Shown piece by piece: positions 12,629 through 35,575 of a stretch of 64,000 nucleotides of DNA. The stretch comes from Trichoplax adhaerens (taxonomy: Eukaryota; Animalia; Placozoa): contig NW_002060943.1 of the NCBI RefSeq assembly GCF_000150275.1, positions 4,918,008 to 4,982,007 on the forward strand. Reading direction: 5' to 3'. Every line of letters starts with the position of its first letter. The first letter of the stretch is position 1. A model generated the notes under the pieces. It was not told the origin of the DNA, did no database searches, and worked only from the letters and a program-made list of their open reading frames with translations. The position numbers were made by a program, and so were the translations under genes.

Positions 12629-12661
12629 CTAGTATAAATTCACGTCCCTTTGCTGACGGGT
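12629..12661 (-). mobile_element. Helitron-like 3' terminus
   Basis: Minus strand CCCGTC-agcaaagg-GACGTG hairpin, 8-nt spacer, then CTAG|T; related sequence at 48226-48301. Confidence 0.45.
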
Positions 12662-14121
12662 TACGATAATGTACTTATTTGTTAATAATTAACAGATAGT
12701 ATTACCATTCGACATAATATATATCCCAGTAATAGCCAGGCACTACTTTATTCACAGCAATGCTTGTAGAATACTACTTTTCAATAATGACTTGATGGAT
12801 GAAATGCTATATTAAGATTAGTAAATGGTCCAAAGCACATTATGATAACTAATGTACGGTGATGGACATACCAAGTTAAGATTAGCAGGTACTGTAAAAG
12901 ATATCTACAGTGCGGTACAATGTCCTTAGTACTGTGGTCAATTTTATACCAATCATTATGATGTGTCTAACGATAGCTTGAGTATGCAAGCAAAGCTTGC
13001 TCTGTCGAAAGCAGCCGTTATAAGAAAATATAACAATCAAAATGGCTGTGTAGAAAACTCTGTAAAGATTCTATGTTTATTCAATTTTCATCAGAGTATT
13101 ACATCGAATCAAAATTTAAAGGCCCAGTGGCCACCCTTAACGATATAACGAATACTATTTTAATAATCAGTACTCTACAGAAATTACTACCTTAGAGCTA
13201 TTCGTTTTACATGAAGAAATCTTGAGGTAAAAAGTACTGTAAGAATCTTATACTGACCTATTGAAATGAACCCATAATCAAAGTCATCTAACAGTAGTAT
13301 AAAAACACCCCCGCGCTGATCGTTTCAAGGGATGGTAGGTGGAATTATACCCTGACAACATAAGCGGTAGACAGCTCGATCCCAGACTGTATTCTCTTGC
13401 AAATGTAGTATCTTTGATGCTATGATGCTTCTAGGAACTGGTACTGCCATCTTATATTTATCGTTGGTACTATATTACTTTATATAAAGCCCATTTTTCT
13501 ACACCTATGTTACAAGTTGAGTGTGATAAATTCAGATTATTTATCATCATATTGCAGTCTGTTATGGTCATCCATACTCTAGCTGAATACAATCGATTTT
13601 ACGGCTTCTACTACAACACATTTATCGTTAATATCTTTTCATTCTACGATACTACCCAGTTTTATAATAGCAGATCTTAATAAAAATAGAATAAGTTTTT
13701 AGTATTTTATTTCCAACATTAAGTGCTTCTATTAATTTCCCTACAGAACTTAGAATGAATAGAGAAAGAATTGTAATTTTACATACTGACACGAATGCGA
13801 GATTACTATCATCACATTATCAGTACAATTTTGTATCTATACTGATCTATCACTTATTCGTAGAGGCAGGCATACAATTTTTATCATAACTTGGTCGAAA
13901 GAAAATTTAAGGGAATAATAATTCAATTAAGCTGATAAATACAACTAAAAGCTAATTAAGTACGGTAAAGATTGTGTATAAATGTCGTATATCAGCTAAC
14001 TGAAGTTTTATAATGGTTCATCTCATCGTTAGGATTTATATCGGCAATATGGTTGCTGGTAAAGATTAAAAATTCTAATCCTAATTCTATATATGCGTAT
14101 CCGTATTGACAATTATAATTC

Positions 14122-14127
14122 TTTATT
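14122..14127 (-). terminator. Candidate polyadenylation signal of the LGR gene
   Basis: AATAAA on the minus strand ~190 nt after the stop codon. Common by chance in AT-rich DNA. Confidence 0.35.
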
Positions 14128-14313
14128 TAGGTCGTCAAGTAATTAAGAGTCTTACCTTATTTATAGGAATGTCGTAAACGAGCACTATTACTTATTCTAA
14201 AAGATCAAGATGGCATTCAATCGAAGTATTAAACTATCATACTAGCAATTGTGATCCTATAAAACGGAGTTTATGCACTGTAAGGTAGTTGACAATTATG
14301 GTTAAATAGACGT

Positions 14314-15619
14314 CTAACTTAAGCTGAACAGTATATTTGATGATGGAGAAAGTTGCGTTGACTTTTTCTTTTTATCGCTTCCCGACTTCTTAATGCCGAC
14401 TTTATTAAGTCGGTTACTTACGCTATTGTTGCCTGTTAATATTTCACTGTCACTTGGTCCCAATGGCGGCGCGATAGAAGTTCTGGAAAAAGTGACAGCT
14501 ACGTCTACGCGTTGAGAATGCTCGGGCTGCACTTTTGCACCCGCAGTATCCAGTTCTCGATCAACTTGAAATTCAGGAAGCGGTTTGGATGATCGATATC
14601 TATTTGATTGTGAGTATTCATTTGTATCAGTTTTTGTACTAAATTTAAAGCGAAAGTGTTGCAGAACTTTCTTGGTTGATAATGTGTAAAGAAATGGGTT
14701 AATGCAAGAGTTCATCGGCATAACCAGAATAGCAATAAAAGGAAGTGCATGGATATCAATCTCATTTCCGAAAACGCCACTTATTAATAGGACATAAAAT
14801 GGCATCCAAGTGGCTAAATCAGTTGTTAAAATAACTAGCATTCGGATAGCAACACGCTTTTCATAATTAAAGTCTGATTTCTTTTTCACTTTCAATCTTG
14901 CTTTTCGTAGCGATGCTAAAGTTAGACCGTACATAATTAGAATAGCTATCCAAATCAGAAATGACATTCCTAAAACTACAAATATCCAATTTGCAAAGTA
15001 TGGGTTATTGATATTACTAGGCATACATACACTACTGTATTCATAAAATCGATTGTCAGATTGTTGGTTAATACTTGCTATGGCTGGTATTCCAACACAT
15101 ACAATACACAAGCTCCAGGATGTAATCATAGTTATAGTAGCACATTTCTTGGTAATTTTAAACTTTGGCATAACAAAAACGATATTGATAAAACGATCCA
15201 CTGTAATGATTAACATTATGACTACTGACATGACACTAGAAATTGCAGTTAAGAAACAAGCTAAAGCACACATTGGACTTTGCAGCCAGTATTCTAAATT
15301 ACTGGCATAGCGATTGTGTAGTATGCCATCTGCAAAACCAATAATGAGCAAGTAAATACCCATGAGGAGATCAGCAGATGCTAAGTTATTTACTAAGAGC
15401 TTGGGTACAGGATTACGGCACTGCTCTAAGGTTTTGTTCACATAAAGTGTCAAGATGTTGCCAATAATGATCATACATGATGTACACCACACAAAAATGC
15501 GTAAAGAAACATGGGCTAGGACATCATTACAGGTTGATAATTGCTCTTGATTATTAATGGGGGAGCAGTCTAGGACTGTAGTTGGAGCTACACAGCATAA
15601 AAATTCACGCGTTGAGTGC
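14314..15619 (-). CDS. Terminal exon of the LGR gene: hinge, 7TM domain and C-tail
   Basis: The ORF-track 441-aa ORF, whose true start is the acceptor ttctatag|G at 15619 (phase 2). Motifs FLCC..DCSP..STCNDVL, IIGN, NLASADLLMGIYL, WLQSPMC, ITVDRF, VCMP, TTDLATWMPF and PMNSCINPFLYT match RXFP/GRL101-type LGR 7TM domains. Confidence 0.95.
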
Positions 15620-18600
15620 CTATAGAATGGATCAAACAATAAAATGCATATTGATATTAAATATAATTTTCTATTTCTCAGTACTTTTAATGTAACAAAG
15701 ATTTGCTACTGAATAGAAATATTTTTGCTAATATTTCAGTCAAGACTTATAACATGAATTAAAAGGTCTTGCTTATATTAGCAAAAGAAAGCTATTTTAC
15801 TAAAAGGAATCAAATGAAGGCTTTTAAGTGAAACTCAAAGACTTTATTGGTTTAAAATTATCACAGGTATATTTTGTATGTCGCAGAGGGATACAAGTTG
15901 CAGTTAAAATGCGATTTATTTTAATATAATAATTTCAGGATTCTACGGTAAATTCTATCTCATTATAGGTGACTAATTGCTGGTTTAATTTGGAATAATT
16001 TGGAGTGATTAAGTTGATAATCTGGATCCACTAACTGCTCTTGCAGCATATAAAAGGTGGTGTAGCTCAGTAGTAAAGGGGCAGTGAAATAAAAAGGTAA
16101 AGGTTGGGATATTCCTAAAATCGTGAACAATCTCCTTTATTTTGATTCTTTGGTTGGTTAAGCCAGTAGTTCCTCCCTTTTTAAGTTTTCTAAGTAATTT
16201 TGTGAGATTATTATTAACAATTTCAGCTAACTCGTGTTTTCCCTAAACTTAAGTTGAAATTTAATGTTGTTAGGTTAAGTTTAAGTTGACCGTTGATTCT
16301 TTAACTTAGGATTATCCAAAATATCATACTTTAATGGCATCTCATGTCTTGTTAGTATCCCATCATGTAATACTATTCTACACATGCAAGTGGCTAAAAA
16401 CGTAATAACAGGCAATGAAAACTTTCATCTTAGCTATTTAATTAGTAGCATTATCGAATAATTTTGCTAACGATAATCATTCCCATCACCGACATATTTT
16501 AGTTTACTATAAATAATATCGTTTAGTTTCATTGTTACTCAATCAAACTTACAAAGTATATAGGCTAGTTAATCCATTAAAAATATCTTGATTAAATTCC
16601 ACTAGTAAATTTCTCTCTAAATGCCTAAAGTAATCGATAAAGGTCCAGTACAGATTATTTCTTACGTATATAACAAATCTTAATGAATGACGGTATACAA
16701 TGTATAAAATTTCAAATATGATTCTCACACTTCGAATTAAAAGTATTACTAGATAATAGCTTACAGTTCCTTCAGGTTACTCAGAATTGAAAAGCAGTTT
16801 GCGTCCAGCTTTCGAATATTATTATCTGATAAGTATCTGTAAAATGGTAAGGACTATTTAAATTTTCATGTTAATCCAATCCATTATAGAACTTTACTTC
16901 TACTATAGAAATCGTCTATTTAAAGTATTTTGAGAAAATTATATTCCTAAGTTCGAATTTTTAATATGAATAGCGCCCTAAAACATTACATTTACTGCAA
17001 TCTTATCGATCATACGTACAAAGTTTCGAGGTAAAAAAATCCCGTAAATGTTTTACCACAGACATCACTCATGAAGTTATTTCCCATATATCTAGAAACA
17101 AAAGCAGCAAATTTATGCTAAACTAATACAATAATTTTTTAATTCAATATACGTTACTCTTTCATTCATGGAACATTTTTTATCGAAAATTGTAGTATAA
17201 GCTAATTAGTAAGTACGGCATTCTAAGAATAGAATGTTGATACTAAGCTTAATCAGATTAGTTATTTATCATTATACCGTTATAAAACAGCTTTACAAAA
17301 TAACTTTACATGTGATCAATAAGTCATTTCTCAAAACCACGTATCCGGGAATAATGTCTACTCTATCTGAAACTTTTTCTCTACTATCAGAAAAAATAAA
17401 GACTTGGGCTCCTCGTATTGCACGCTAACCACTAAATTTAATGGCTAACTATGTTATACGGTATGCCTTGTTCATATACTCTTCTACAATAGTTCAGACA
17501 TCTCAGTTAGTAATATTAATTAGGAAGCCTTCCGATGAATCAGAAGCTAACTTTACCTACTACTAACTAATGAAGACAACAGTATATATATAAGAACATA
17601 GGCATCTAATGACTAACACAAAATAGTCAGATTACAATATATAATTGTTACGGAGCAAAGCACCGTACTTGCTAATTAAATAGATTTTGTCAGTATTTAG
17701 CTAATACATCATATTGGTAAGCATAATTGAAATTAAGAATATTAATGTCTAGATTGCTAGACGACAAAAGGCATAATTGTATTTGCAATTAATTAGTAGA
17801 ACCTATATACAGTAGATATTAATAATGGCGATACGTTAGCACCCGCTACGTACGCGCGATTATCATGCATTTATCGTGCAATTATCGCGCATTTATCGTG
17901 TGATTATCGCGCATTTATCGTGCGATTATCGCGCATTTATCGTGTGACTATCGCGCACTTATCGTGCGATTATCGCGTATACAAATCATGTAAATCTTAT
18001 ATTGTGAAGTTACTATGTGTGCACCATAAATTTAGTGGAATGGTATAAAAGGACGAGCGAATGCTCAGTTCCTGAGTTCCTTATTAGATCGTGTACGAGA
18101 AGGTACTCGGCTACTCTACTAATAAAAACTATACTAATCTTTTAGAACAGTCTTATCCCTGTGTGACCGAAAGTAGTAAAGAACTACCATACAGTAGATC
18201 TCCAGGTGTAGTGGAGCAAGGCATAAGTAATCTATTAGTTTAGTGTAGTAGTTCGCAACATAAGTTTGTGACAATCCTATCATGGAACACTTTTCAAGAT
18301 AATATAAAACCTTCTATACTCTAATCTCAACTATACAGCATATAATACTGCAATAGATACAAAGCCTTAAATTTAATGAATAAAATACAAGGTAGTTATC
18401 ATAAACTATTCAATAGTGAGGATTTTAGGGCACTATTGTGTATACATATGGCCTAAATTATTCAGATTCTTTAATGAACTTACAGTATTCTAGCTTTGGC
18501 ATATCCACTTCTTGTGTCTTTGTTAATTGCAGTGATCTTGTTGTGATCCAAATAGCTATGATGCAACAAAAATATGAGTAAATATATTTAGGAAATTTGC

Positions 18601-21600
18601 TTTAATGCATTCATGCAATTAAAACTAAAAAATTTAAATCCTATTACAGTTCTTAGTCCTTCAAGTTTACGTTATACCTACATTGCCTGTAAAGACAAAA
18701 GATCTGAAAAGTAATAGGCATTAATCTCCATTATTTGGTTATAGCTCAGATATCTGTCAACGTATCAGTAGATAAAGGGTTAATTTTTGATCTTTCTTTA
18801 ATTAACTTAATAGCTAATTAGTAAAAATTGAGATTCTTATTTCTTGGTCAAACATACAAGCTCCTTAATGATATGCTCTGTGCAACAAACATACTATGAT
18901 CCAAATGGGACAAATTATTGTTACGCAAATCTCTGTTATTATAAAACATAAATTCATCTTTGTTAGAACTAAGGAGTCGATATGTATGTTACATAAGGCA
19001 TTCTATCTATTTTATAAGTTAATATGGAATAATTTAAGTTTATTGCATTTTTTCTTCTTACAATGACTTTAATTCTTTCAATGGCTGGATAAATTCTTTT
19101 ACATTGCTCGATAGCAGGTTATTTCGACTTAAATTTCTAATTTAATTAAAGCCAATATTTTAGAAAGAATATCTCATTAAATGTCTGAAATATAAGCATT
19201 CTAAAATAGATTACACATTTACAGTACTTCTATAGTCATACTCCTTTAATATTGTAGATTAACGAATCATTTTTCAGCCTTGATAAAGTAATATCAAGTA
19301 GAGCATTTTTTGTAAAATTCTACTTTATTACATGAAATTAGTTCATCTAACATTACTATCTACCTTCAGTCTAAGAATTTCTGACTTATTATTTTAAAAT
19401 CTACAATTTACATTCTTACAATCAAAGTTTGAACTTCAATTATCTTTATACAATCCTATAATTTTTATCTTAAGATAACTTGGAGCTGCATTACTGCAAT
19501 ATTTAGTTGTTTAATTACTTATGAAGCTGAATTATGAACTACTATAATATAAAGTAGAGATACAACTTAAAATACAAATACTTTTTGGCCTTTGTTATAT
19601 ATTTAGATGATAACAGCACTTCTGAGAATTTACGTTAGACTACTGGTACTAAGATTATGAAATTATATTTTATTATAGGTATGACATAATTTTGCTGTAT
19701 GTTCTAATAAATATGAATATACTTATTCTACTTGTAAAATCATAAGTCAACTAAACCACAAGCTAAGCAATCTTCGAAATGTATAAATACAATTAGCTGA
19801 TTGATCAATAAACAATTCCTGATTAATGGTATTCTAAGCTGCTACGAGCATAATAGCCTTCAATACAACATTAGAAATTTTTTCCATTTATACAAAGTAG
19901 CAAGTATTATGTTATTATTCTTACAATCTTTCCAAGCTAATCTCTTTTGAGAAAACATCCGCTTCTAACAGTAGTATTTGATTGCCGGCAAGATTACTAG
20001 TAACCCAGAAAAATGTAGTATTAATTCATAAGATTTTTCAGACTTAGAAATTCAATATACTTCATGTAATTACATCAAATATTGAAATTAGATGCTTAGG
20101 TAAGCTTTACGAATATGTAAATCTGATAAATTACGAAATATATTGGTATTCATGACAAAAGTAAATATTTGTTATGATATCTTACAGATTTTTCAGCGTG
20201 GATAAAGGTGGTAATCTTATATGATTAGATTGCAGGTCGCCTGCAATATCCAGGCTATTGTAACTTATATCTCTTAAAGAAAATAAAAATTTAGAACATT
20301 AATAGAAAGCTAGCAGTTTAAATTATATTAAGACAGAGGAATAAAATGTCTCATGTTCTTGAAATATAAACGAAACATATCCTCATAATTAAAGTCTGTT
20401 CATTCATCAATGCTCATTTACAATGTCTTAAGAAGTGGCAATTTCTCCATGCAATTAGTGGCATTTTGACCTAAGTTGCTATTGCCAAGATTCCTAATTA
20501 AAAATCGATCAATGTTATTTAGGATAATGATCACTTGCTCTCCTAGCAATACATTTCTGAATATAAATGAGTCAAATTACACTCGTAATCGCACATCGAT
20601 TACCATAAACTCACATGATAAATAAGTCAATCAACGGCTCTACCACGGCACATTGTATGTGGTGCATATTGTTGCCCACTAAGTTACTTTATTGGAAGAA
20701 AGGGTATCATAGATTAAAAATAATTGACTGTCTTAATAAACATTATGAACTGTACCAGCAAATCGTGAATCTTATAATTTGAAATTGAAGCTCATTTTTA
20801 AATAAAAGTGCTGCTATAAGGCATCAATGTGTTTAGAAATTTTATGCGTACGAGAGCGACATAAGTTATTAATGCTAAATCTAGGAAAAGTCGCCATTCG
20901 AAAATTTTCATTTTATTAATATAAATATGTATCCAATGCTATAACTAAGAAGCTTTATTTCAAAGCTGAGACTTCATATGTAACATAATGTAAGACAGCC
21001 GGTTTACACATCTATTAGTATTATGAACATTGAATTAGAAATGACGATAACGATAGTAACTTATCTGCATGTAGAAAATTTCTATTTAAATGGAGTCTTT
21101 CTTAAATGAAGTATCGACTATGAATAGTTCTAATTTTTTATTTTTCGACTGCATGACTTATTTTATTGAACAATGTCTATTGCAGTATTATTAATAAATC
21201 CTGCTGTATCTCGAGCTGTGAGAATTATATAAATTGTAGCATGTCTTTGAATACACTTTTTAGATAAGTAAGAGCAAGCAAGAAAATCATTTGCGCAACG
21301 CACTATCGTCCAACCGTGTTTAAAATAGATGAATTCACGCATTATTAACTTTCTACTTTGTAAATTTTAAGCAATTGCATTACTTACAGCTCTTCTAGTA
21401 TCTCTAAGCCTTGAAAAGCGTCAACTTGGACATCGCTAATGTTATTATGACTAATGTCTCTGGTTTTATAGGAAAGAAACAAAGAAAAGGATCAAGAGAT
21501 AAAAATGAAATATGAGAAAAGAGATCGATTATAAAACTAAAGATTAAATTGAAACAATATTTGCATTATTAAAATAAAATCATGATTAGTTTTTACGTTT

Positions 21601-24600
21601 ATAATGTGTCGTATCTAGCCACAACTGTAAGATATAGTATTTACATGGAGTGCTGATGTTGCATCCATATACGAAGATATAGCGAATAGCCTTACTTAGA
21701 TGTTATACCTGATATGTCTTAACAACACAAAATGTGTCATGATTACTTGTATATAGATATATTATGATATAAGAATGGTATTGTAATGCTAATTATGGTT
21801 ACTATAAGTTATTAGATTAATTCCATACTGAATTCCGTTGACAATACTACGAACCGTCGTATTGATTTTGTTTTTGTTATTGATTAACCTCTAACGCTAT
21901 ATAAGTAGATTCGCTATCCCTCTCAACTAAATCCTAAATTTTAAGATCTGTGATTTGTTGTACGACTATTATTACTCAGTTTAAAATAACAATTGTTATT
22001 TGAAATATTATTAAGAAAGAAGACTTCATTACAGATGGTTATCGTGATTTTATACATACAAGATTTTAAGAGATGTCAAGTTCTTAAAGCGACAACCCTT
22101 TAATGTTGCCAAGTAATTTTGGGCTAAATTTCTATTAAATGGATAAAACTGGGTTAAAATATCAATTTTCAATTTACTTGATATAACTATGATAACATTT
22201 TCATGAGTAAAATATAACATATATCTTATTAGCTAATAATAGCTAAACTTAGATACTTACAGAGTTCTTACAGTTCGAAGATCATCAAAATAATGATTCC
22301 CTATTTCTATCATCTTATTACGGCTGAGGTCTCTTAGATAATTAAATCATTAGAATTAGCTTAAAATAATTTAAGATGGCATAGTTGTTAATCTTTACTG
22401 TAAAAGTAAAGCATAAGAAGTTTATCTCACAGTTTAGTAAGTTTAACTAAATCCTTTGCGAATCCGAAAGCCAGGGAACGTAATTTATTGCTGCTTAAAT
22501 CCCTAAGTATTTAATGATGTGTTTGTATGTTACACCTAACGACAATTCTCATAAAGCTTAATCGGTACCATAAAATGATTTAAAAAAATCCGCTATAATA
22601 TGATAAAGAGTGCAATATAATGGATATAAATGCAAAGAAAAATCTGAAACGGTTAGCTATTGGACTAAGCTGATCAATATGAATAAATATTATTGATACA
22701 AAATATGGTATTAATTATGTAGTAAAAAAATATATATAACATAGGATATTCTGGATAATATCTCAAGAGTTTGCTAAGACTAAACGAAATTATGCAATAT
22801 CCTGGTCTATAACTAATACCACATTTCATAATGTTAGAAGATTTGAACGTATATTTATCTTCTGTATGGCTAATATAAGGTAGTATTGTTATTTGTTTTT
22901 AAGCGATAAGCTATGCGACAATAATGATACTGCTATAATTCTAGCTACTTTATGTGAAATGCAATGTGGCGAATAATTTAGATAAAATTCTGATTTCTGA
23001 TCTTCTAATCTTATTAATCATTTATTATTTCGCCATCAAAACGATTTTTTGTTTTATCATTATGTATAGTTATTCATGATGAAGATGCAGCAATGCAACT
23101 ATTACTTACAATATTTCTAAGGTTCTTAAACCTGAAAATGAACCTTCATGGATTGTTTCAATTTCATTTTTAGACAGATATCTAGGTAACAACATTGAGA
23201 TATACTAAGCAAGCTATTTCAATCTATTTCTATAACACCAAATTAATTCTATATTGCCAAACACAGAAAAGGCATACTTCAAGAGTAATCGTAAATAAGA
23301 TATATGCGATAATATTTAAGATATGATAATTTAAGCTAAGAATTTCTGGAAAAGACTTACAATTTTTTAAGATTTCCTTGCCTATAAAACTGATTGTCTT
23401 CAATATATTTGATTTTATTTTCAGTCAGATTACTACAAATAATGAAGAAGGAAAATTTCTCCATATGCTTGTTACTAATTAACACTTCATTAGAGTTTCA
23501 TAACAAAATAACAATGCCCTTACAGTATTTTTAAAGCTGCCAAATGCTTCAAAGCCCTATTTGGAATAGAGACAATTTCTGAAGAGTTTAAATGACTAAA
23601 CAAGCAAATATCCGGAGTTAATTTGGATCTAATTAAATGTCTAATGAGTTTTGTCATGCTAAAAAAGTTATGTTTATTGTTATTAATCTTACATCTCTAG
23701 TAGGTGAACCAAATTTAAGAAAATTTCGTCTTGTATATTTTTCATATCATTTCCACTAATGTCTCTGCAATAAGTTAGATATTTACAAGCAAATTTTGAT
23801 GATCAGATGACTTCTATTACGGAAATCATTTAAGAGCAGAACAGTTTTGAAAAAAATGCGTTTTAAGTTTTTATTCAATCAGTCATTTAACTATAATCCG
23901 GTATCGCTGGATGATACTTACATCATTTCCAACCGTTGCAATGCAATAAACGTGTTAGAGTTAATTTCGTTAATTTTATTACCTTTAAGCAAGCTAGAAT
24001 AATTAAATTTTATCATTCATTAGAAACTTGATTAAGATATAGTGTTTTCGTGAGCCCGAATGGAATAGGGCCAATGGCCTTTAGAACGATCGTAAATCAA
24101 CAATTTACTTTATTTATAAGTGAAAATATAAATTTGTCAAATTTCATCGAAATTGGCTAGTAGATTTGCTCAAGATTTGCAAATTTGACCTAAAACATGA
24201 TCGCAATGGATCTTCATCGTACATAAAGATATATTCTAGTGTACTCTAGTACTTTTAAAGGTTATAATATACGGTGAATAAGGGCAATATTGTATCAGCT
24301 AATCGCACTAGGTACATAAAATAATTGTTTAGGTTACTACAAAGCATTTCTAATGACTGTCTTTGGAAAATTTATTATGCCACTTCCAAATACTGTTAAA
24401 TATTAAGCAATTAAGCGATTTACAGCAGTAATAATTTTATTATAATCTATAGTAACTACATTTAATTCTATTCTTCTAAAAATAAGTAAATATTATATCT
24501 CAAGGAAATCTTATTATTACTTACAGGTGCGTTAAATGCGGTAAACTAACAAAATAATCCCGTATTTTCTTGAGTGAATTAAAGGCCAAATTACTAAATC

Positions 24601-27600
24601 GGAAATGATAATTAATTATAGATCTTGAAGACGTAGATTTTATGGCCAAAAAATAATCTAGTATATGCAATGGCACTCTTACAGTTGCTTAAGACTTAGT
24701 AATCCGTATAACATTTTCTCATTTATAATGTCAATACGATTTCGTTGAAGATTCCTAAGAATAAGATGCTATTTTTCAAATTTTACCAATAACTGATCAA
24801 AATATTCAATACATAATAATTAATGACTAATCAACTTTCAAAAAGTGCCACTCTGAAAACCGATCCTTCTACAAATGCAACCTCGAATATTATTGATACA
24901 AGCTGTAAATCCTACAGGTTCTTACAACTCTAGAAGATGCGATGAGGAGTAAAGAAAATAGTCTTCTATGTTCGTTATGTTGTTATCGTTGAGATTACTA
25001 TGTTTAGAATAAAAGTCAAAAATTTAATTCCAGTTGAACTTGACGAACTACCAAATTATATTCACTAGAACATCTAAGATCATCAATTAAAAGCACGTAA
25101 TTTCCGGTGGTCGGAAGTAAATTTTCATTCAGAATATTTTGCATAATTAAAATGAAAACATCAGATACTAAAAGATCCCTAATTGGACAATACAACTCAG
25201 CATTTTGGTGTGGCAAATTAATATTCTTAATGTCTTCTTGCGCCTTTATATCACATTATCAAATGGCGTTATATTACTTCGAATTCAAAATAATGTAACA
25301 CAGCCATAATAAAAAATAACGAAGCCAAATAGATCTTTATTCGTAACCTACTAGATTTAAGTATTGACTAAATATCTAATGGAAGTTGCAGTTTAACAAT
25401 TGTAGTTTCATCATAGTTAAAGTACTAGGTTATCTTACATTTTTCTTAAGAATTTTAGAGGCGAAAATTGATATCTAGTCAATGTTGTCAATCTATTTCG
25501 AGATAGATCGCTAAAATTAAAAATGTAAGAAAATTTAGAAGATAAACATTTTAGTTGCAATTCGTGAATCTAATTTTACAATATTTAGTAATTACACGTA
25601 AGATCTTACAGAAATTGAAGCCTGCCTAAACCTTGAAAACATTTTTCTTGGATGGCAAAAATTCGATTTCGAGACAAATCCCTAATCATTTCGATTTAAA
25701 ATATGGATATATTAAATAAGTTAACCTGAATCGCTAGCAAATAATAGAAATTTTTTGCTTACTCTACTTGCACAGTATTCGTTTATAAAATATAATTATC
25801 AACGACATTTTTAAGCTATTTTATGCTTTGCTTTAGGTGAATGTGTGAATTTTGAAAGGACAGTTATGCTCAATTATAGTATGTCTGTAACATTATGATC
25901 TTATATAGAAGATGCCTAGTATAGTAATATCCTAATATACGAATACTTATCATATACCGTTTAAGTACTGTATTGTATTACATTCATAATGTACGACATC
26001 ATGACTACATATAGACGACATGCTATACATATAAAGACATTATCTCAATCCCATCTAAAACCTATAAATACCCTTGTACGCTAACTCGTTAGTCAGTTCC
26101 TACATTCCTGCTATCTCAAATACCTTATCTATAACAACCATATCATTGTTAGCCTGTAACTTGTATCTCAATAAAATCCTTTATACCTTCTATCATCGTC
26201 TACCTTAAAATACTTTACGCTACTTAAAGAAGATATCATTACATGTCTAGATAAATAGATATTCGCAAAATCAATAGTTTACTCACAGATTATTTAGATT
26301 TTGCATCCCTGTAAAAGCATTAGCTTGCAATTCTTGAATATTATTTCTAGTTAAATTTCTATTTGATTTGACAGATAATGTTAATGTTTGTAGTCAAGTA
26401 TTTTTTAAATGGTCAAATATTTAATGAACTGCACGCTAAACAGATTTAATATATGTGTAATTACAATTTAAGCATTGAATGCATTCTGTTAAAGGCACCA
26501 ACTTCTATGTTTTGGATCTTGTTTTGAGCTAATGACCTAAATAAATTTAATGCGTTATTTAAAGTGCAAATAAGAACTGATTTCGACACAGTAATTACTG
26601 TAGCTAATTTTTCGCATACAATTCCGTTAAATTGAGTAAAGATGAAAATTGATTCTCGTGCATTCTAGTCAAAAGATTTCCTTGCAAATACCTTTAAAAC
26701 AATAAAAACAGCATTTAAATATAAAAGTGAATAAATTTTGAGAGAAAATATGTTCTATGGTGCAAAGATACTTTACTCTATGCCTACAGCGTTAATATTC
26801 TCTAGTTCACTCACAAATATTTCAAGTCTTCTAATTTGCTGAAGGATTCTACGTCTAAGCTAGCCAGTCGATTAGCTGAGAAATCCCTATGTTATATCAT
26901 TATCATAATAACAGGTCTATGTAAGGGGATTATTCCGTATCGATTTTCTTAATTCAATGGTAAACAACTAATAATGTCGTAAAGGTCATACAATGTCTGT
27001 AGTTTCGTTAAACCAACAAATTGATGTGCTTTTAACTTGGCGATTATGTTTCCGCAGATAGACCTAATCAATACCATAATTTAAATTAAAGCTACTAATT
27101 TGTCATATTAAATTATAAAAAAATTTAGCATTAACGGCTCAGTTGTGTCTTGCTTCTTACACTTGTGTAACAACTTACAAGGATTTCAAGCTATGCAATG
27201 CTACAAATGCTGAAGGATCTATCGTTGAGATTATATTTCCGCATAAATTGCTATAATTCCGGGTATAACAGTCATAATTTAAAAAATATGATTGATAGAA
27301 TTCAGGATTGATACAGCTTTTGAAATATTAAGAAGGATAGATTACTGCTAAATAAGCTATTGGTTATCGCTATAGTGTCCTCGTAGTTCTGAAAGTGCAT
27401 TTTATTAGCGCTTAGAAAAAGTTTGCTCTACTGAGCTTATTCTTTAGAAGAAGTGTCATTATATCGGATATTGATAATGTTCTACGCTTAAACGTTACGT
27501 CCATTTATACTTACAGAGTATCTAATTTCGATAAGCCGATGAATGCAGTGTATTCGATATGTTCTAGCTGATTTTGATGCAAATATCTGTATGCGAAGGA

Positions 27601-30600
27601 ATTAAACGTAGAAGCATATCACTTATGTCTATAGAAAATACCCAGCACGTAGCATCTATTTTAAATAACCAACCCTACAAATAATATATCGTATATATGT
27701 TCTAGCAAGCTTAATTATCCTTACAATGATTTCAATTCAGTCAAATGAATAAAGGATAATGCGGAAATATTTCTTAAAATATTCCTGGATATGTCCCTAT
27801 CCGAAATTTACAACGGTTAGAATGCTAAATCGTACTAAGTAAATTCATAACGATTTTCAACGAATTTAAGTTCATCTTACAAAATTTTCAATCTTTCCAA
27901 GTGCATCAAATTGTCTTTCGTTATATTTTCTAATAGATTTCCTGATATGCGCCTAACATTTTCCCAAAGAAATACAATATTAAATTTTTGGGAAATAAAT
28001 AATCAAATGCAATCACATTATTAATTATTTTCGAAAAGTTAAACTTCTAAAAACTAAAAACTAAACCATTTTCTACCTTAAAATCTCATCAATATTGCCT
28101 AATATACAATTAATGCACGGTTGCAAAGGTACTTATAATAGTATAATATTACTACTTAAAATTCTTTTAGAGCAATATATTTGCGGCAATTACTAATAGG
28201 ATATATGAAGCCATTGCTAAGAATATTTCAAGCCCATTATGTCAATTATATATATATCATTTGCAGTCGCAATTGAATTTAGTCAACTGCTATAATTGTA
28301 GCGATATAACATTTCATACAATTCTTCAAGATTATGCATGGATTGAAATGCGTCTGGATAAATTTTCTGTATTCGATTATTGGCCATGATTCTATCCAAG
28401 TAATGTAATGCATGAATGATAAATTTTTCCAAAAAATATGATTTAAATAAAGCAATGTCAATACTGTAGCAAAATAATCGTATCAGTGTTTAAATAGGTA
28501 GATAATTGTAATAAATAGAATATTAAATTAATAGACCTTACAGCGTTTTTAATACGGTTAGGTTACCGAAGACTTCTTTCTGAATCTTATAGATGCTATT
28601 AAATGCCAGATTACTTGTAGTTTGAAGTAAATAATAAAGTTCAGTAATATGATATATATGAACGTATATAAAAATAAAGTCATAGAACTCGGTATTCAAA
28701 GTTAAATACTTAAAAATTTGCTCATGCGTTCGACTCCGTGTGATATATACCAATCACGAAATTCCAAATTTTAGAAAAATAAGGGCTTTATTGAATCTTA
28801 TACAAAGATTAACTACACAGCTCTACTCTAGCCGAATACTACTTCTAAAGACTTCTACAACGAACTAACTGAATAATCTAAAGTTGCATGCTTTTATACT
28901 TCCCGTAGCATTCGCAGCTACAATCCGCATGGCAACCTTTTACCTTATTTTACACATAGTTAAATTATTCTTAGTAAGACTATTCTACTACGGACCATCA
29001 TTAATCCAATATGGATACGACTACAGTACTTACGTAGACATTATTCACACCAGCCAAAGTACAATGAATTAACCATATCCTAATATATGATTTACAGTTC
29101 TATTTTTACCTATAGCCATATTAGGAACTCAACAGCTTACTGTATATAGTCATCTGTACTCTAGCATAGCGTCTCTACCACTACAGTCTATAGTTACAGC
29201 TACCAAATATCTCTTAGGATAAATATCTACCGTACATTGTACTACACATGGATAACAGTCTACAATCACAATACTAAGTTACGTTACACTCCGCTTACAG
29301 TTTTATTAAACTTGATAGTTTAGAAAAAGCTTCTGGCTCCAGAAATGTAATATGATTGTCATAAAGAGATCTAAAATATTTAGATAAATATAATAAGCAC
29401 ACTTAGGCATGCGATAGACTGCATAATTTGATCTACTTGTATTACATACCATTGACAAATGTATATCACCTATATAAACTACAAGTAAATTACTATATCA
29501 TACAAGTCTATTAGCTTCTGTAAATGTTCAAATTGATGAAAGTGGATACTTATTAAAGAGTTTCTAGCTATAAGCCTTTTATAATGACCAACCAATCGAT
29601 ATTTATAGTGGACATTGATTATATCGAAAAAGAATAGCAGCATAATATTACTAAATTTGAAAACAAATTTTAAGTGCTGATATCCGATGAAAGGATTACC
29701 ACAAAAAATACTTACACCGATTTCAGTTCGGTTAAATTAGTAAAGGTATGCACGTGAAAATCAGTTATATTGTTAGCATACAAGTTGCTGTAAAAGTGTA
29801 ATTAAAAACATCTTATTGTTATGTAGCGAAATTAAAAACTAATAATTGGTAGTCCTTTAAAGTATTGAAAATTTACTATGAATTTAGTAAGCTAATCTAA
29901 ACTTACATAACTTGAATCCGAGGTGATCGATGAAAACATTCCGAACATACATAGGCAATCCGATTATAACTTAAATCTCTACGGAAAAAATATCTCCTTA
30001 ATTAGCATTTTACAATATATTGGATAGGAGTAACTTTAAAATTTCATTCCTAACATGCTAATAAGCTGAGTTAATCCATCAAAAGAATGATCATATAGGC
30101 TTTCAATGATATTATTAGATAAGTTCCTATAGAAGAGGAATGGTAAGTTTCTTATAATTCATATCTTATTGCAATAGTAAACATAATACAAAATATTACA
30201 GAAAACTTACAAAATTTTTAAGCGATTTAAAGATAAGAATTCATATGGCTTAATTTCCACTATCTTGTTATAAGTCAACTTTCTAATTGATTCAGCAATA
30301 ATCATTATCATACACACAAAAAGCAGCATTATGAGGTTATCTAAGTCCATTAAATAAATATTTACAAATTCTGCAAGGATTTTAAACCATTTAAAGCTTT
30401 TTCTTGCATGTCGGTTATAATATTATTTGATAAGTCTCTATAAAGAATATAAAGTGTGATAATAAATTAATTTCTTTGTATGAAATATGATTATTACGGC
30501 GTCTTTACTTGACTTCGTTATGGTAATTATTGGAGGAAAGCAATAATATCAGAAAAGTGATATTTCTACAAATTTAAGTTCTTACAATATTTCTAGCTTT

Positions 30601-33600
30601 TCCAGAACATTAAACGTAAAATTTGAAATCTGTAATATTTTATTCTTTGATAAATTTCTACAATCAGTATTGAGTAGTTAGTAAAGCAAGCTGTAATTTT
30701 TAAAATCAAATAATTATTTTACTTCATACATACAGCTGTATAAGGGCAGCGAAGCCAAGAAATGTAGATTCACTAACTTCATTGATAATGTTAATCGAAA
30801 AATCTCTACAATAAGCATAAATTCATGAGCTGAAATACGTCCATTAACTTTTATAGAACACATTACGAATATTTGGTTGATGGCATAAAAATAAATTTAA
30901 AGTTTTAAATCTTTATTTACAGTAATGACAACAAGTTCGTTGCAGTAAGATTACTGAAAATTTCTAAAAATAAAATGCGGTAAAATCGTTCAATTACTTT
31001 AGCTACTGTATTAATTCCGCTTTACTCTAGGCAATGTTGATGAAGTAACATTAATATTAATTCATTCCCTTAAATCACCATTTTCTAAGTTTAATCATAT
31101 CTGAAGAAAACTTCTAGAATTAAAGCTAAAGAGAAAATAAGTGGCAATTTTATTTAAAACTTAAAAAATTTTACAGTTATGATCTTACAGTATTCGTATG
31201 TTGTTTTGTTTTCTTCTCGTAGAACCAAGGTTGATTTCAGAGATAAGATTATGGCTAACATTCCTAGATGAGATTGGGTTAGACGCGAAGTGATCGTCAC
31301 AATTTTCGATCAAATTCACATGTAATGGTCAAAAAAATTTATTCATTTGACCACAAGTATCAATAATTTACAGCTACTATAAGATTGTAATAATTTTAGT
31401 GGAATTATTTAGATTCTTACAATGCGAATAAGTTCGGTAAGAGGTCAAGCAAACTGCTATTTAAGGATCGGAGGCTGTTATCGCTAAGGTCTCTAATAAA
31501 TGCCGTTAACAAGAGATATCATATTTGATTCATAATAATGTTAAATATGTTAAACTTATGGCATATTTACAAATATCCAAGTCCTCTTGTTTCAAATAGA
31601 AAGTTCTCAGGAATAACTTTGATATGATTACTACTCAAATTTCTGAAATGTGATCACGAGACTTTTAATTTCTTATCAAGTTATTGTCAAGCTTTTACTA
31701 AATATAGACATTATAAAACTTTTACGTACATAGTTTTCCAGTAGGAATTTCTGATGATCGGAAATTTCACTAGGTTATTACCGTCACAATGTAAGTGATT
31801 TCCGTTAGATGTACAGAATTTCGAATAATACGATATTACTATAAGGTAATGATCGTATTTGTTAGTGTTTTATTTTACAAGCAATAATTAGTTGGTTTTA
31901 CGTGTTTAAATTTTGATAAACTTTCAATTTACTTATTTCATTAAGCAAAGCCGATACGAAGCTACATCTTTGATTAATCATAGTGTAATACCCAAAGAAT
32001 AACACCAAGTATTTAATTATTTAATTCTGTCAGCTAAACCTATTAAAATATTCCTTATAATATTAGTTATTACCGAAATTAGTACCATTACTAGAGAAAG
32101 ATGCATTTGATTTGAAATAATCCATCTCGCTGCAGCTCATGATTCCAGTTAATCTTACCGAACTTAAATTTTCGCATTCTAAATGGAATTAGAATCTCCT
32201 CTTTAATATCAATTATTTGTTAAATTCAGGTATGCTGCGAAAAATATCTTATTAGAGTACGATCATACATCGTATAAATATATCACAAACCAGCTCTTTG
32301 ACAAGATAACGAAAATATTAAATCTACAATTCTTCTCCTAAACTATGCGTCAGGGCAATAAAATTCGCTTAAGAAACACTTATTAACACTTACTCTTAAT
32401 TCTACAGATTCGTAGTGGTTTATACACTTTTTAATCTATGTTAAATAGTATAAAGCTATCAGGCTAAATGTCGCGAACTTCTCTATGGCGAGATTACACT
32501 GTGATAAACTACTTCTCACCCGGTGTTATAGAGCCGTGTACGAAGCATGGACTAGCTATTCCATTCTCTGATAATGAATGTTGCACGTCTGCATAGGGTA
32601 AATAATAGTTTATGATAGAAATTAATCCTAATTTGCTATAATAAATATAATCACAATACGAAATTCCATAATATAGAAAAATTAAAATTAAAATTCGATA
32701 TAGCTACCGCAATACGCTTCGTCTGAACCGTCAGAACAGTCATTTTTACAGTTGCACCATTTACTAGTAGAAATAAAATTGTTTGAAAATATGCCACATG
32801 GATACTTGTAATTGTTATCATCATTTTCCTTTATTTGGCATTTAGCAACTGAAATCCAATAAAATGATCAGTTTTATTAATAATTAATAGTTTAATAATG
32901 GCCATTAACGGCGTTACTCTATACTTAATTGTAATTCCATCATACACCTTAAAACTATAATAGAAGTAAACGAAACGTTTGAATTTCAGAATGACAGCGT
33001 AAATAGTGAGATTTAGGAATAATAATCTCGGAAAATAAGGATTAAGAACATACTATTCAATAATAGTGTAACTACTTCAATGTAATACCTAACTGGTTTA
33101 CAATATAAAGATTGTGAGCAGTGTCACTTAAGTTTTCAGAACTCAATATGAGAACAAAATTCTATGTCTAGAATTGCCTTCTACGAAGCTGAGATTAAGA
33201 TACCTGAATCATAGACATTATTTATATTTATCTATTGCAATTAATTGGTTTTTATTTGACACTGTTTTCAAGGGATACATAGTTTACTCCTATGCAATAT
33301 TCTAACACCAATAGCTTATCTTATAGTTTCTCTATACTATCACGCGACCAACAAAAAGAAGAAATGTATGTTTTATTTCTAAGCTGATTAAGTAATCAAA
33401 TCAGTTTATCAGCTAAATTAAACAGCAGAAAAAGTGAAGACAACTTGGAAAAGAAGTTTAGCTATATTTTTAGAAGGATATATTTATGTAGAGTGATTTA
33501 ATGTGCCCGCATTGTTAGTGTATCACATTAATACGACCCTAAAAACCTAGATATAGGAATCTAGCCGAGATAAATCGATAATACGGTAGTGGCCAAACAT

Positions 33601-35575
33601 TTTCTAATCTTTTAATAGTTGCAAATATTTTCTGCATATTACAACATGTCGCGGTACGCCGTTACTAATTAAGCAACTGTTGATTAGTGAATGCTTATGA
33701 ATAGATAAGATAACGTTATGTGCTATGTTTAATGCGCTTGTAGCTGATAATAGGATGGTAGAAATGAGATAGAAATATAAGTTGTTAACAGTTAATTTAC
33801 TGCAGGTTTGTAAGGTGTGTTAATATCTAAAAATTGAGCAGTATATGGACGAAGGTTAAGCGTCTTAACACCTGATAGCTTGTAACTATCTAAGTCTGAG
33901 AATATTGACATGTATATTTAGTAATGGTATTATACTAATTAATGTAACTTGTAAAGTATGAATTCTCACCCTTTAATATTGGAATTCACTGTAGAAACCT
34001 ATTTAAGCGCGTGTGTTTGTAGAATAAAGTTAGTAATTGCTCAAGAAACGGCAAGACTCATATCGTGAAGAATAGTGTAATAATTAGTCAGTTGTCTGTG
34101 GAGATCAGCTGAGAAATCGAGTTCTCAAATACTTCTCTCATAGAAACTGAAAGTACTGGGAGAAATAGCCCAAGTTTTAAGTAACTACACTAGAGTTCTT
34201 TACTTTCCTTAGCCACAAATGAGGGTTGAGACACAACAATACTTACTCTCGCCTGCATTGCAATACATAAAAACTTATCCTACATACTACACATACAAGT
34301 ATGGCGATATCTATAGCAATTAAAGCCTTCACTTAAGTACGGGCTGTGCCAGGTCCATATGAATTTAGATTTGGACATCATTAAGTAAATGGATTTTATT
34401 CTATATATGCCAGTTAAGAATTCTTATCTACTTAACTAAGTTTAGCTTAAAATGCCATCTAATGCATTATAACTGTTAAAATTTGATAACAAATTAAAGC
34501 TTCCATTTCAAATACTTTATTAATTTCGATTCATAAATATTAGTGATTAGAAAAATTAATCGATTGTTATGAAATTATGTTACAATTTAGAAAATTAAAG
34601 TCATCGAATTAGTATGTAATGAATATCATTCAGATACTATATAACGTGGAATTGAGTATAGGTCATGTCTAGCAAATAGTAGCGTTAGGCTTTTAAAATT
34701 AAAATAAGCGTTACAACATGTATTAATCTTCTTATTGACAAATTGTTTACATAGTACTCAAGGCATTAAAAATTACAGGAAATAAAGATGATGAGCGATT
34801 TTTGAGAACTGTTATAGGAAATAGGAATATTTTCTAGTAAACTATATACTAATGACGAAACTTATTTGCTAAAGATATAGGGAAGATATTACCTTTTATA
34901 TACTACACTGCGAACTGCTATATTTTAAAAATATATCTTATTGGTCTTTAAAATAAGTTTTTAATTTTAAAATCAAGCTTGTATTGTCTATCAAATCGAC
35001 TTAGACATATTAATAAATTAGATTTTTTCTAATATGTCTACTTAATTATATACTATATCAGAACGAAAAGAAAAATAGCGTTTTTTACATATTGAAAGAC
35101 TCATTCTTTCTACTCTTTAAAGATTAACATAGGTTCAACTGTGCATTCCGTTATCGCTATCGCATTTATAATTGATAATTTCATTCAGCCTTTAATAATT
35201 TTCTATCTATTACTGCTAATAGCTAATATATCTGGGTATAGTCAAATCTTTGTAAGCTGGAAGCTAAGATTTTGTAAATACTCTGCTTTTAATTATTTGC
35301 TACAAAGAGACCGAATTTACGCTGCCGTCGTTCTCATGTAGAGATATATCCATATGTGAATTATCCTTTATGTTATACTCTTGCTTAATTTAAGTACGAT
35401 ACTATAGCATAAAATATTGTGTGATAGTTTACTTCAATTTATAACAGATTCTCATTGCAATAAATATAAACAAGTTCATACTGATTACTTTAAGGCTAAA
35501 AGGCTATCATAGTTACTTACCTTGAAGTAGAAGAAAAAGACAGACAGAACCAAACTTTAGAATGTAAGAATTCAT
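14314..35575 (-). CDS. Multi-exon LDLa-LRR GPCR (LGR type C, RXFP/GRL101-like) with 48 single-LRR exons; 54 exons, ~1753 aa
   Basis: Hand-spliced, all GT-AG, frame open throughout. 5' exons: 35521-35575, 32708-32848, 32520-32588, 32074-32178, 31730-31838. LRR exons: 31571-31642, 31421-31492, 31189-31263, 30734-30805, 30586-30657, 30366-30437, 30211-30282, 30055-30126, 29907-29978, 29716-29787, 29504-29575, 29299-29370, 28542-28613, 28320-28391, 27881-27952, 27725-27796, 27515-27586, 27179-27250, 26992-27063, 26815-26886, 26620-26691, 26465-26536, 26287-26358, 25610-25681, 25439-25510, 24926-24997, 24683-24754, 24525-24593, 23922-23993, 23693-23764, 23524-23595, 23361-23432, 23110-23181, 22431-22502, 22261-22332, 22060-22131, 21388-21459, 20615-20686, 20422-20493, 20186-20272, 19925-19996, 19062-19136, 18858-18932, 18682-18753, 18484-18555, 17020-17091, 16765-16836, 16553-16624. 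Last exon 14314-15619. Summed length 5262 nt, divisible by 3. Confidence 0.88.
16553..31642 (-). CDS. Array of 48 phase-2 single-LRR exons (typical 24-aa extracellular LRR)
   Basis: Each exon reads xL/IxxNxI/LxxI/LxxxxFxxLxxLxxL, e.g. DISHNNISDVQVDAFQGLEILEEL (21388-21459) and NLTRNNIQELQANAFTGMQNLNNL (26287-26358), bounded by AG and GT. 43 exons are 72 nt, three 75 nt, one 69 nt, one 87 nt. Confidence 0.92.
17646..18273 (+). mobile_element. Solo LTR, family C, nested in family B
   Basis: TGTTAC...GTGACA; 5 extra nt (ATAAT/ATCCT) at the insertion site; TATAAAA 18044-50, TCAGTT 18065-70, AATAAA 18121-26. Confidence 0.78.
17860..17977. repeat. CpG-rich minisatellite (11-bp unit, 22-bp higher-order unit)
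   Basis: 11 units of TATCGYGYRWT-like sequence, alternating TATCGCGCATT and TATCGTGYGAT. Confidence 0.95.
25886..26243 (+). mobile_element. Solo LTR, family D (4-bp TSD, Ty3/gypsy-like), LGR intron
   Basis: TGTAA...TTACA, TSD TGTC; TATAAAT 26063-69, TCAGTT 26093-98, AATAAA 26170-75. Single copy in the window. Confidence 0.75.
28739..29288 (-). mobile_element. Solo LTR, family A, in an LGR intron (same sense as the gene)
   Basis: TSD CTCCG (28734-38 / 29289-93); inserted 10 nt into the intron after exon 29299-29370. Confidence 0.9.
31730..32588 (-). CDS. Exons 3-5 of the LGR gene: Cys-containing linker and LRR N-terminal cap
   Basis: 32520-32588 DVQHSLSENGIASPCFVHGSITP; 32074-32178 ECENLSSVRLTGIMSCSEMDYFKSNASFSSNGTNF; 31730-31838 VISYYSKFCTSNGNHLHCDGNNLVKFPII (C-x8-C-xxxxLxxFP, LRRNT-like). 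Phases 1-1, 1-1 and 1-2 join correctly. Confidence 0.8.
32708..32848 (-). CDS. Exon 2 of the LGR gene: LDLa module
   Basis: VAKCQIKENDDNNYKYPCGIFSNNFISTSKWCNCKNDCSDGSDEAYC, with the LDLa signature DCxDGSDExxC; phase 1-1 exon as is typical for LDLa modules. Confidence 0.9.
33647..34233 (+). mobile_element. Solo LTR, family E, LGR intron 1
   Basis: TGTC...GACA ends, perfect TSD CAACA; TATTTAA at 34000, AATAAA 34023-28. Single copy in the window. Confidence 0.7.
35521..35575 (-). CDS. Exon 1 of the LGR gene: start codon and signal peptide
   Basis: acaATG MNSYILKFGSVCLFLLLQ followed by a consensus donor AAG|gtaagt, phase 1, in frame with exon 2 (...LLLQVAKC-Q). Confidence 0.75.

Follow-up and report, generated by a model that had tools for sequence, protein, structure and literature searches.

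In the genes for glycoprotein hormone receptors, each LRR is encoded by one small exon and the 7TM domain by one large exon, a layout shared by the gene described here, and one LRR per exon in constant phase is the ordinary structure of LGR ectodomain genes. Across LGR types A to C, the number of LRRs ranges from 7 to 18, with 7 to 9 in type C, and 46 LGRs have been identified in Trichoplax adhaerens, 41 of which are placozoan specific and present "unusually high" numbers of LRRs, the example given having 34 (Hauser et al. 2022, PMC9545775).

In the window analyzed in this study, a 64-kb stretch of the T. adhaerens genome, the minus strand carries what is probably one protein-coding gene for an LGR of about 1,700 residues, a member of the extensive LRR-rich branch of the LGRs that has expanded in placozoans. 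Its elements, listed from the 5' end of the gene, are as follows:

35521..35575, minus strand: candidate first coding exon, with an ATG and an 18-residue signal-peptide-like hydrophobic stretch, ending in phase 1 at a gtaagt donor
32708..32848, minus strand: LDLa-like exon of 141 bp, phase 1-1, with six Cys and the DCSDGSDE calcium-cage motif
32520..32588, minus strand: optional linker exon of 69 bp, phase 1-1, with a cag acceptor, a gtgaga donor and an open frame
31730..31838, minus strand: N-cap exon, phase 1 in and phase 2 out, with two Cys ahead of a first half-repeat of the L..FP type
16553..31642, minus strand: LRR exon array, 3,477 nt coding for 1,159 aa
LRR exons 1 to 12, minus strand, high coordinates (72 bp unless a length is given in brackets): 31642, 31492, 31263 (75), 30805, 30657, 30437, 30282, 30126, 29978, 29787, 29575, 29370
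LRR exons 13 to 24, minus strand, high coordinates (all 72 bp): 28613, 28391, 27952, 27796, 27586, 27250, 27063, 26886, 26691, 26536, 26358, 25681
LRR exons 25 to 36, minus strand, high coordinates (72 bp unless a length is given in brackets): 25510, 24997, 24754, 24593 (69), 23993, 23764, 23595, 23432, 23181, 22502, 22332, 22131
LRR exons 37 to 48, minus strand, high coordinates (72 bp unless a length is given in brackets): 21459, 20686, 20493, 20272 (87), 19996, 19136 (75), 18932 (75), 18753, 18555, 17091, 16836, 16624
20186..20493, minus strand: repeats 39 and 40, both irregular, encoded by a degenerate exon of 72 bp and by the 87-bp exon
14314..15619, minus strand: last exon, with a four-Cys hinge, seven transmembrane helices, the tail and the stop codon (Pfam 7tm_1, E=3.7e-28)

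The exons join in frame over 5,085 nt, or 1,695 aa, as summed from the coordinates, and the frame is kept when the optional 69-bp exon is included (1,718 aa); searches were run on single exons, and frames and lengths were computed from coordinates. The original prediction had described a giant LDLa-LRR GPCR gene of about 1,750 residues, with one signal peptide, one LDLa, one N-cap, 48 LRR exons and one 7TM domain in a single frame. We confirmed this observation, since all of the elements, the signal peptide and the LDLa as candidates, could be located and their phases are compatible, even though the length is somewhat smaller; the interpretation attached to it is partly supported, as detailed below. 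At the genomic level, the LRR array is in the same reading frame as the 7TM exon, which is the only exon of LGR type in the 64-kb window. As had also been predicted, no second 7TM domain and no convincing second signal peptide occur in the array; the search for the latter returned only hydrophobic ATG read-throughs of the sort that chance gives in AT-rich DNA. Judging from the sequence, all of the exons would be joined in one mRNA.

The array consists of 48 intact one-LRR exons, all of phase 2-2, 43 of which are 72 bp long. When 72-bp AG..GT exons with an LRR pattern and an open offset-1 frame were sought, 42 were retrieved, all of them on the minus strand between positions 16553 and 31642, with none on the plus strand and none elsewhere in the 64 kb, and the gaps are filled by six atypical in-phase LRR exons (three have 75 bp, and the others have 69, 72 and 87 bp), which brings the number to the 48 originally counted. 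Shuffles of the 15.1-kb stretch yielded a mean of 0.06 such exons and a maximum of one, so that about none is expected by chance. The AG acceptor and the GT donor are present at every one of the 48 exons (96 of 96 flanking splice dinucleotides intact), and at each of the 47 junctions between LRR exons, the codon split by the intron specifies L, I, V or M, restoring the conserved Leu/Ile. The consensus, L-[ND]-L-S-x-N-x-I-x-x-I-x-x-x-x-F-x-G-L-x-x-L-x-x, is that of the "typical" 24-residue LRRs; roughly the first 37 repeats are regular, and several of the final 11 or so are not, among which repeats 39 and 40 likely introduce a kink or a break in the solenoid. The repeats are ancient and show constraint as coding sequence, since no pair of exons exceeds 58% DNA identity (mean pairwise identity, 42%) and the second codon positions are conserved (57%) with the third near random (32.5%). 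Recent tandem duplication was considered and excluded together with misassembly, given the low maximum identity, the absence of lag periodicity in the array and the absence of repeats shared among the introns; the last of these comparisons argues against the assembly error that had been named as a possible flaw of the original prediction.

The public gene model of the locus, TRIADDRAFT_51798 (XP_002108651), is a prediction of 2008 and not a cDNA. It is truncated with respect to the locus, since its 643 aa comprise 8 of the 48 LRR exons and the 7TM domain, about a third of the inferred gene product. It starts inside the array with an intron read-through lacking a signal peptide, and it contains exon 40 while omitting exons 38 and 39. 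We also noticed that it joins nonadjacent LRR exons in frame. The full-length product is absent from the public protein collections, where the 643-aa model is the sole exact match, no longer protein with this 7TM domain was found among 1.84 billion representatives, and a literature search with the identifiers of the locus retrieved no paper. The gene model is corrected here from 643 to about 1,700 residues.

Arrays of this kind are widespread. The T. adhaerens genome contains at least 60 LGR-type 7TM exons, and the genomic paralogues are 35 to 43% identical in the 7TM domain (E down to 2e-89); some of the 7TM copies elsewhere in the genome are broken, with stops inside several of the matches. 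The same LRR micro-exon arrays occur at all 20 of the paralogue loci surveyed over 10 kb each, and as many as 34 exons were counted within that distance, the array still continuing at the edge and the full repeat counts lying beyond that range. In Trichoplax sp. H2, a paralogue has at least 39 LRR exons, and its annotation divides the array between two genes, of 191 and 1,270 aa; since another LRR exon is located in the interval separating them, the split points to an annotation artifact. In a more distant placozoan, with a 7TM domain 54% identical, LRR exons 44 to 48 are retained one to one and in the same order, with 46% identity. Two of the exons kept in that species are left out of the public model or would not be predicted by it. 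Long non-placozoan homologues (1,700 to 2,900 aa) were also considered as precedents for giant LRR arrays and were rejected, being multi-LDLa, CUB or lectin proteins with about 10 LRRs.

It follows that the 48 LRRs of the original prediction are real but do not single out a lone giant receptor, kindred arrays being widespread among the paralogues and already published. That homologues with many LRRs are common and described, which the original prediction had named as grounds for refuting it, turns out to be largely the case, with 34 repeats in the published example and at least 39 in the H2 paralogue. The gene is a real, new and larger member of the published LRR-rich LGR class, and with it the known range of LRR numbers in placozoan LGRs extends to 48 or more, compared with 34 for the example in PMC9545775. 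Supplementary Table 2 of that paper mostly gives TriadITZ identifiers without sequences, and XP_002108651 is absent from the few XP numbers that it contains. Moreover, the annotations of 2008 and of Trichoplax sp. H2 both break such arrays, and family-wide domain counts and phylogenies derived from those models are probably biased.

The phase of the LRR exons bears on how the gene is used. Since symmetric exons allow any subset to be skipped without loss of frame, the dominant mRNA could be shorter, and the locus could correspond to one gene whose 48 exons are used combinatorially, with the 48-LRR mRNA rare or absent; all the exons are of phase 2-2 with lengths that are multiples of 3, the junction codon gives L, I, V or M for any pair joined, and the public model does combine a nonadjacent subset in frame. 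We consider this unlikely, because a one-LRR-per-exon architecture need not mean that skipping is regulated, the public model is a prediction, each exon is individually conserved as coding, and idiosyncratic exons keep their order in the distant species, which fits constitutive use.

Two or more transcription units, namely, an upstream one for a secreted LDLa-LRR protein and a downstream one for a shorter LGR starting within the array, would account for the position at which the public annotation begins and for the similar division of the H2 array, and several long introns (600 to 1,392 bp) could house a promoter. However, within the array we found neither an N-cap or a C-cap nor a Cys-rich module or a convincing signal-peptide exon, every LRR exon ends in a consensus donor and none in a stop, the public model begins by reading through an intron, and the H2 division has the explanation given above, all of which makes this arrangement very improbable. 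A decaying or nonfunctional locus, in which the array was kept by chance or belongs to a recently dead paralogue of a fast-turnover family, is hardly credible, as the broken 7TM copies elsewhere in the genome and one possible relic LRR start in an intron (21096-21046) are outweighed by the absence of stops from the 48 exons and the 435-codon last exon despite 30% GC, by the intact splice dinucleotides and by the conservation of the orthologue in a distant placozoan.

In the single-gene reading, which we prefer, the 5' end is the least certain part of the model, because of a 2.7-kb first intron and an LDLa match below threshold. Between positions 32850 and 40000, the putative signal-peptide exon ranks second among the hydrophobic ATG exons that have a phase-1 GT donor, and it is the nearest of them upstream of the LDLa-like exon. 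It begins at position 35575, the start coordinate of the original prediction. The LDLa-like exon has the six Cys and the DCSDGSDE motif, but the score against Pfam PF00057 (E=0.0016, 19 bits) falls under the 24.1-bit cut-off, with the match confined to profile positions 15 to 37, the C-terminal half, and the N-terminal half is noncanonical with shifted Cys spacing. This LDLa-like motif is the single instance across the window and 21 paralogue or orthologue loci. Neither the optional linker exon nor, at an E of ≤0.01, the N-cap exon has a Pfam match; the latter was recognized by its sequence pattern and because it immediately precedes LRR exon 1.

The last exon, whose phase-2 acceptor lies at 15620/15619, corresponds to residues 208 to 643 of XP_002108651 with 100% identity. 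It presents the DRF, TDxxxWxP and NPFLY motifs and a Ser/Lys-rich C-terminal tail of about 110 residues, and the four Cys of the hinge between the last LRR and TM1 are kept in the orthologue (P0002). No TIR domain was matched in the Pfam-profile search, and the array ends in the 7TM exon. Thus, with an LGR-like rhodopsin-family 7TM domain, an in-frame LRR array and a Cys hinge, the protein has the features that define an LGR.

As for its place within the LGRs, the top matches among solved structures are TSHR, RXFP1, FSHR and LHCGR; the alignment with TSHR and RXFP1 covers the hinge and all helices, and in the case of TSHR it begins with the Cys-x-Pro...Cys-[EN]-Asp segment of the hinge and runs through helix 8. 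The best non-placozoan matches are GRL101-like or relaxin-receptor-like (RXFP2-like) proteins (1e-40 to 1e-46), those named GRL101-like coming from Lineus (173 bits), Ruditapes, Palaemon, Acropora, Mercenaria, Cherax and Mya. The original label, an RXFP/GRL101-type 7TM domain, agrees with these names, but among solved structures the score of TSHR (122.6 bits) is a little higher than that of RXFP1 (114.8 bits), and a maximum-likelihood tree of 25 7TM domains, built without type B or human RXFP sequences, neither settles the deep forks nor places the protein inside or outside type C; the label is better read as a statement of similarity than of phylogeny. In the same tree, the protein falls in a clade with two placozoan orthologues (support, 99/97), and FSHR lies on a long separate branch. 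The 48 LRR exons depart from the 7 to 10 or so LRRs of type C, and the single LDLa-like motif in the window departs from the multiple LDLa modules of GRL101 (type C2), with which the 7TM domain nonetheless shares its closest similarity outside Placozoa. The traits of the placozoan LRR-rich LGRs, a 7TM domain nearest to other T. adhaerens LGRs and many LRRs, are both present.

The predicted order of the protein is signal peptide, degenerate LDLa-like module, N-cap, about 48 LRRs, four-Cys hinge, class A 7TM domain, whose activation motifs are intact, and Ser/Lys-rich tail. A protein or other macromolecular ligand may bind the LRR solenoid, the hinge would pass the resulting change to the 7TM bundle, as in the glycoprotein hormone and relaxin receptors, and the signal would then be taken up by a heterotrimeric G protein, by arrestin or by both. 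The original proposals of a superhelical or multi-lobed sensor and of a microbial ligand are conjectural. An AF2 model was made for the ectodomain of a paralogue with 34 LRRs (P0013, residues 1 to 880), standing in for this protein, and it shows LRR blocks interrupted by irregular stretches, so that a multi-lobed ectodomain would be compatible with it, although the model bears on the shape and not on the ligand. Its best Foldseek matches are the TLR13, TLR8 and TOL-1 ectodomains, joined by those of TLR7 and TLR9 (E=5.5e-21 to 1e-16), with TM-scores of only 0.4 to 0.5.

Trichoplax has been reported to lack true Toll-like receptors (PMC6321704). It is possible to hypothesize, though we regard it as quite unlikely, that the expanded family of GPCRs with 30 to 50 LRRs, this gene among them, is the main surface pattern-recognition system of this animal, reading microbial, algal or self surface molecules with LRR solenoids of TLR size or larger and signaling via G proteins or arrestins, and that the skipping of one-repeat exons might add diversity. 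The question raised is why an animal with few cell types keeps dozens of GPCRs with ectodomains of TLR size or larger, and for which ligands.

Among known systems, Tadh-LGR6 to -46 (e.g., Tadh-LGR15, with 34 LRRs; PMC9545775) share with this gene the species, the LRR-rich ectodomain, the short hinge and the class A 7TM domain, whereas the protein described here has 48 repeats against that high example and, in addition, an N-terminal LDLa-like module. RXFP1 and RXFP2 (type C) have an LDLa, LRRs and a 7TM domain in the order in which the LDLa-like module, LRRs and 7TM domain follow each other here, the last aligning over its full length (E=4.6e-32), but they present about 10 LRRs, and the LDLa of our protein is below threshold, with noncanonical Cys spacing. 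In RXFP1, the LDLa and linker act as a tethered agonist; since the LDLa-like module lies about 1,200 residues from the 7TM domain here, the same role is not obviously possible. Lymnaea stagnalis GRL101 and the GRL101-like proteins (type C2), the best non-placozoan 7TM matches, have many LDLa modules (six Pfam LDLa stretches in the matches), CUB or C-lectin domains and about 8 to 10 LRRs, in contrast to a single LDLa-like module and 48 LRRs. TSHR is the best solved-structure match (2e-34), and the hinge segment aligns with the TSHR segment holding FNPCEDIMGY; however, the long type A hinge is missing, and TSHR, FSHR and LHCGR have 9 to 11 repeats compared to 48. Finally, the ectodomains of TLR13, TLR8, TLR7, TLR9 and Caenorhabditis elegans TOL-1 are built of the same class of "typical" 24-residue LRRs, but in place of the TIR domain and single-pass helix of Toll-like receptors, this receptor has a 7TM domain.

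Both strands of the whole window were scanned for LRR exons, defined as 72-bp stretches bounded by AG and GT with an open offset-1 frame and an LRR start pattern. The scan matched 42 exons on the minus strand, every one of them inside 16553-31642, and none on the plus strand or in the rest of the 64 kb, while the shuffled 16553-31642 stretch gave a mean of 0.06 exons. In the wider gaps between these exons, we could recognize six additional in-phase LRR exons of unusual form or length, which gives the same number, 48, as the original prediction. All 48 present an AG acceptor, a GT donor (mostly gtaag, gtatg or gtgag) and phase 2-2, and the codon split at each of the 47 LRR-LRR junctions encodes L, I, V or M, corresponding to the hydrophobic position conserved across the repeats. 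The consensus, L-[ND]-L-S-x-N-x-I-x-x-I-x-x-x-x-F-x-G-L-x-x-L, is that of a "typical" 24-residue LRR. LRR exon 48, whose donor follows 16553, is in phase with the acceptor at 15620/15619, and the junction restores a Leu. The predicted coding sequence sums to 5,085 nt, that is, 1,695 amino acids, or 1,718 if the 69-bp exon at 32588-32520 is included; the window DNA has a G+C content of ~30% and contains no N. In genome coordinates, it corresponds to G000:C1414:4918008-4982007, within a scaffold of 13.26 Mb.

Elements of the predicted gene other than the 42 scanned exons
35575-35521, minus strand: candidate first coding exon, with ATG, hydrophobic core and gtaagt donor, phase 1
32848-32708, minus strand: LDLa-like exon, phase 1-1
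32588-32520, minus strand: possible linker exon, 69 bp, phase 1-1
31838-31730, minus strand: N-cap exon by pattern (an L..FP half-repeat preceded by two Cys), entered in phase 1 and left in phase 2
31263-31189, minus strand: atypical LRR exon, 75 bp, in phase
24593-24525, minus strand: atypical LRR exon, 69 bp, in phase
20493-20422, minus strand: atypical LRR exon, 72 bp, degenerate, in phase
20272-20186, minus strand: atypical LRR exon, 87 bp, in phase
19136-19062, minus strand: atypical LRR exon, 75 bp, in phase
18932-18858, minus strand: atypical LRR exon, 75 bp, in phase
14314-15639, minus strand: 7TM open frame, 441 codons, 100% identical to XP_002108651 residues 208-643

The 7TM exon matches Pfam 7tm_1 (E=3.7e-28), and its alignment with TSHR starts at the Cys-x-Pro...Cys-Asn-Asp segment of the hinge and extends through NPFLY, with a DRF motif also present. 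No Pfam match was obtained for the N-cap and linker exons. As for the single LDLa module originally proposed, the exon encodes a DCSDGSDE motif and six Cys, but the Pfam match (19 bits) is below the 24.1-bit cut-off and covers only the C-terminal half, and the Cys spacing is shifted, so that "LDLa-like" is the more appropriate term.

The introns of the array usually measure 76 to 190 bp, with several others of ~600-700 bp. In the intron that separates exons 37 and 38 (701 bp), a short open stretch starting with LHLNRNFL (21046-21096, minus strand) may be the relic of a lost LRR exon. The longest intron (1,392 bp, exons 45/46), whose equivalent in the distant orthologue is only ~85 bp, houses a CpG-rich tandem repeat (17842-18002; 11-bp period, ~15 units). 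The 43 72-bp repeats within 16553-31642 (minus strand) include 18 N-x-S/T sequons, many deriving from a recurrent N-L-S repeat start, where glycans would sit on or beside the beta-strand face.

The public model of the locus (XP_002108651/TRIADDRAFT_51798, 643 aa) begins with intron read-through and joins exons 37, 40, 41, 42, and 45-48, eight LRR exons, to the 7TM exon. Since no longer protein with this 7TM was found among 1.84 billion representatives or, within the searchable length range, in a 90%-identity collection, describing the array as hidden in micro-exons is fair for the NCBI/JGI model.

Pairwise DNA identity between the 72-bp exons averages 42%, with a maximum of 58% (28% by chance), and no lag periodicity was found. 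Second codon positions are 57% identical versus 32.5% at third positions, which points to a long-lasting coding constraint on the structural motif. Misassembly or recent duplication is unlikely, because no repeats common to the introns were found, the sole repeat being the 11-bp microsatellite. In a distant placozoan orthologue recovered on two Logan contigs (7TM identity, 54%), five 72-bp LRR exons upstream of the 7TM correspond to exons 44-48 in the same order, with 46% identity, and four of the five, including the odd repeat 45, best match their positional partner.

LGR-type 7TM domains encoded by a single exon number at least 60 in the T. adhaerens genome. A survey of paralogue LRR counts, suggested with the original prediction, covered 10 kb upstream of the 7TM at 20 loci and revealed arrays of the same design in all 20, with 5 to 34 micro-exons each (23 over the same distance in the gene under study). 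Since the farthest LRR exon lies within ~1 kb of the 10-kb edge in most loci, these arrays probably extend further. A paralogue of Trichoplax sp. H2 (NOWV01000255.1; locus L023, positions 2768-22361) has at least 39 LRR micro-exons, which the annotation divides between a 191-aa LRR gene and a downstream 1,270-aa "GRL101-like, partial" gene; one more LRR exon sits between them, and the two models look like one gene. Moreover, 46 LGRs have been reported in T. adhaerens, 41 of which are placozoan specific, have a hinge of their own and carry LRRs in "unusually high number", for example 34 in Tadh-LGR15 (Hauser et al. 2022, PMC9545775). Given the survey, the H2 paralogue and that report, this kind of receptor is already known; the present locus adds a corrected model, a higher repeat count (48 versus 34 in that example), and an LDLa-like head. 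Of the paralogous 7TM exons, the closest (G000:C1414:4887325-4888380, minus strand, 43% identity) is located ~30 kb before the window start. Since it lies 45 kb downstream of this gene, on the same strand, and 22 LRR exons were counted over its first 10 kb, the two giant LGR genes form a tandem pair. An unrelated intronless rhodopsin-family GPCR frame (55795-56796, plus strand, 333 aa, Pfam 7tm_1 E=1.5e-13) lies in the opposite orientation, ~20 kb past the LGR gene's 5' end.

As a proxy for ectodomain shape, we considered the AF2 model of the H2 paralogue (residues 1-880 of the 1,270-aa protein, P0013; pLDDT 82, pTM 0.68). It features regular LRR blocks with irregular stretches at residues ~300-420 and 660-720, and its best fold matches, a likeness belonging to the paralogue model, are the TLR13, TLR8 and TOL-1 ectodomains (TM-scores 0.4-0.5). 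In the gene under study, repeats 1-37 are mostly regular and several among 38-45 are irregular. Given these irregular repeats and the interrupted blocks of the paralogue model, a plausible shape is a long curved solenoid on the N-terminal side, with a broken part towards the C terminus. Ligand binding would take place on the LRR solenoid, the change would be passed on by the short disulfide-bonded hinge, and signalling would come from the class-A 7TM. A tethered LDLa agonist such as that of RXFP1 is doubtful here, because the LDLa-like module is degenerate and ~1,200 residues away.

Among solved structures, the 7TM scores comparably with TSHR (122.6 bits) and RXFP1 (114.8 bits), and far lower with LGR4 (45.6 bits). 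Its closest relatives in a large library are placozoan (38-56% identity), followed by proteins named GRL101-like or relaxin receptor 2-like at NCBI. In the maximum likelihood tree, it clusters firmly with two orthologues (99/97), whereas the deeper forks have no firm order; thus, "GRL101-type" is to be read as a statement of similarity. The RXFP/GRL101-type assignment originally made holds in this sense, but TSHR scores like RXFP1, and the 48 LRRs set the locus apart from type-C LGRs. The GRL101-like and relaxin receptor 2-like relatives outside Placozoa, for their part, combine many LDLa, CUB, and lectin modules with ~10 LRRs.
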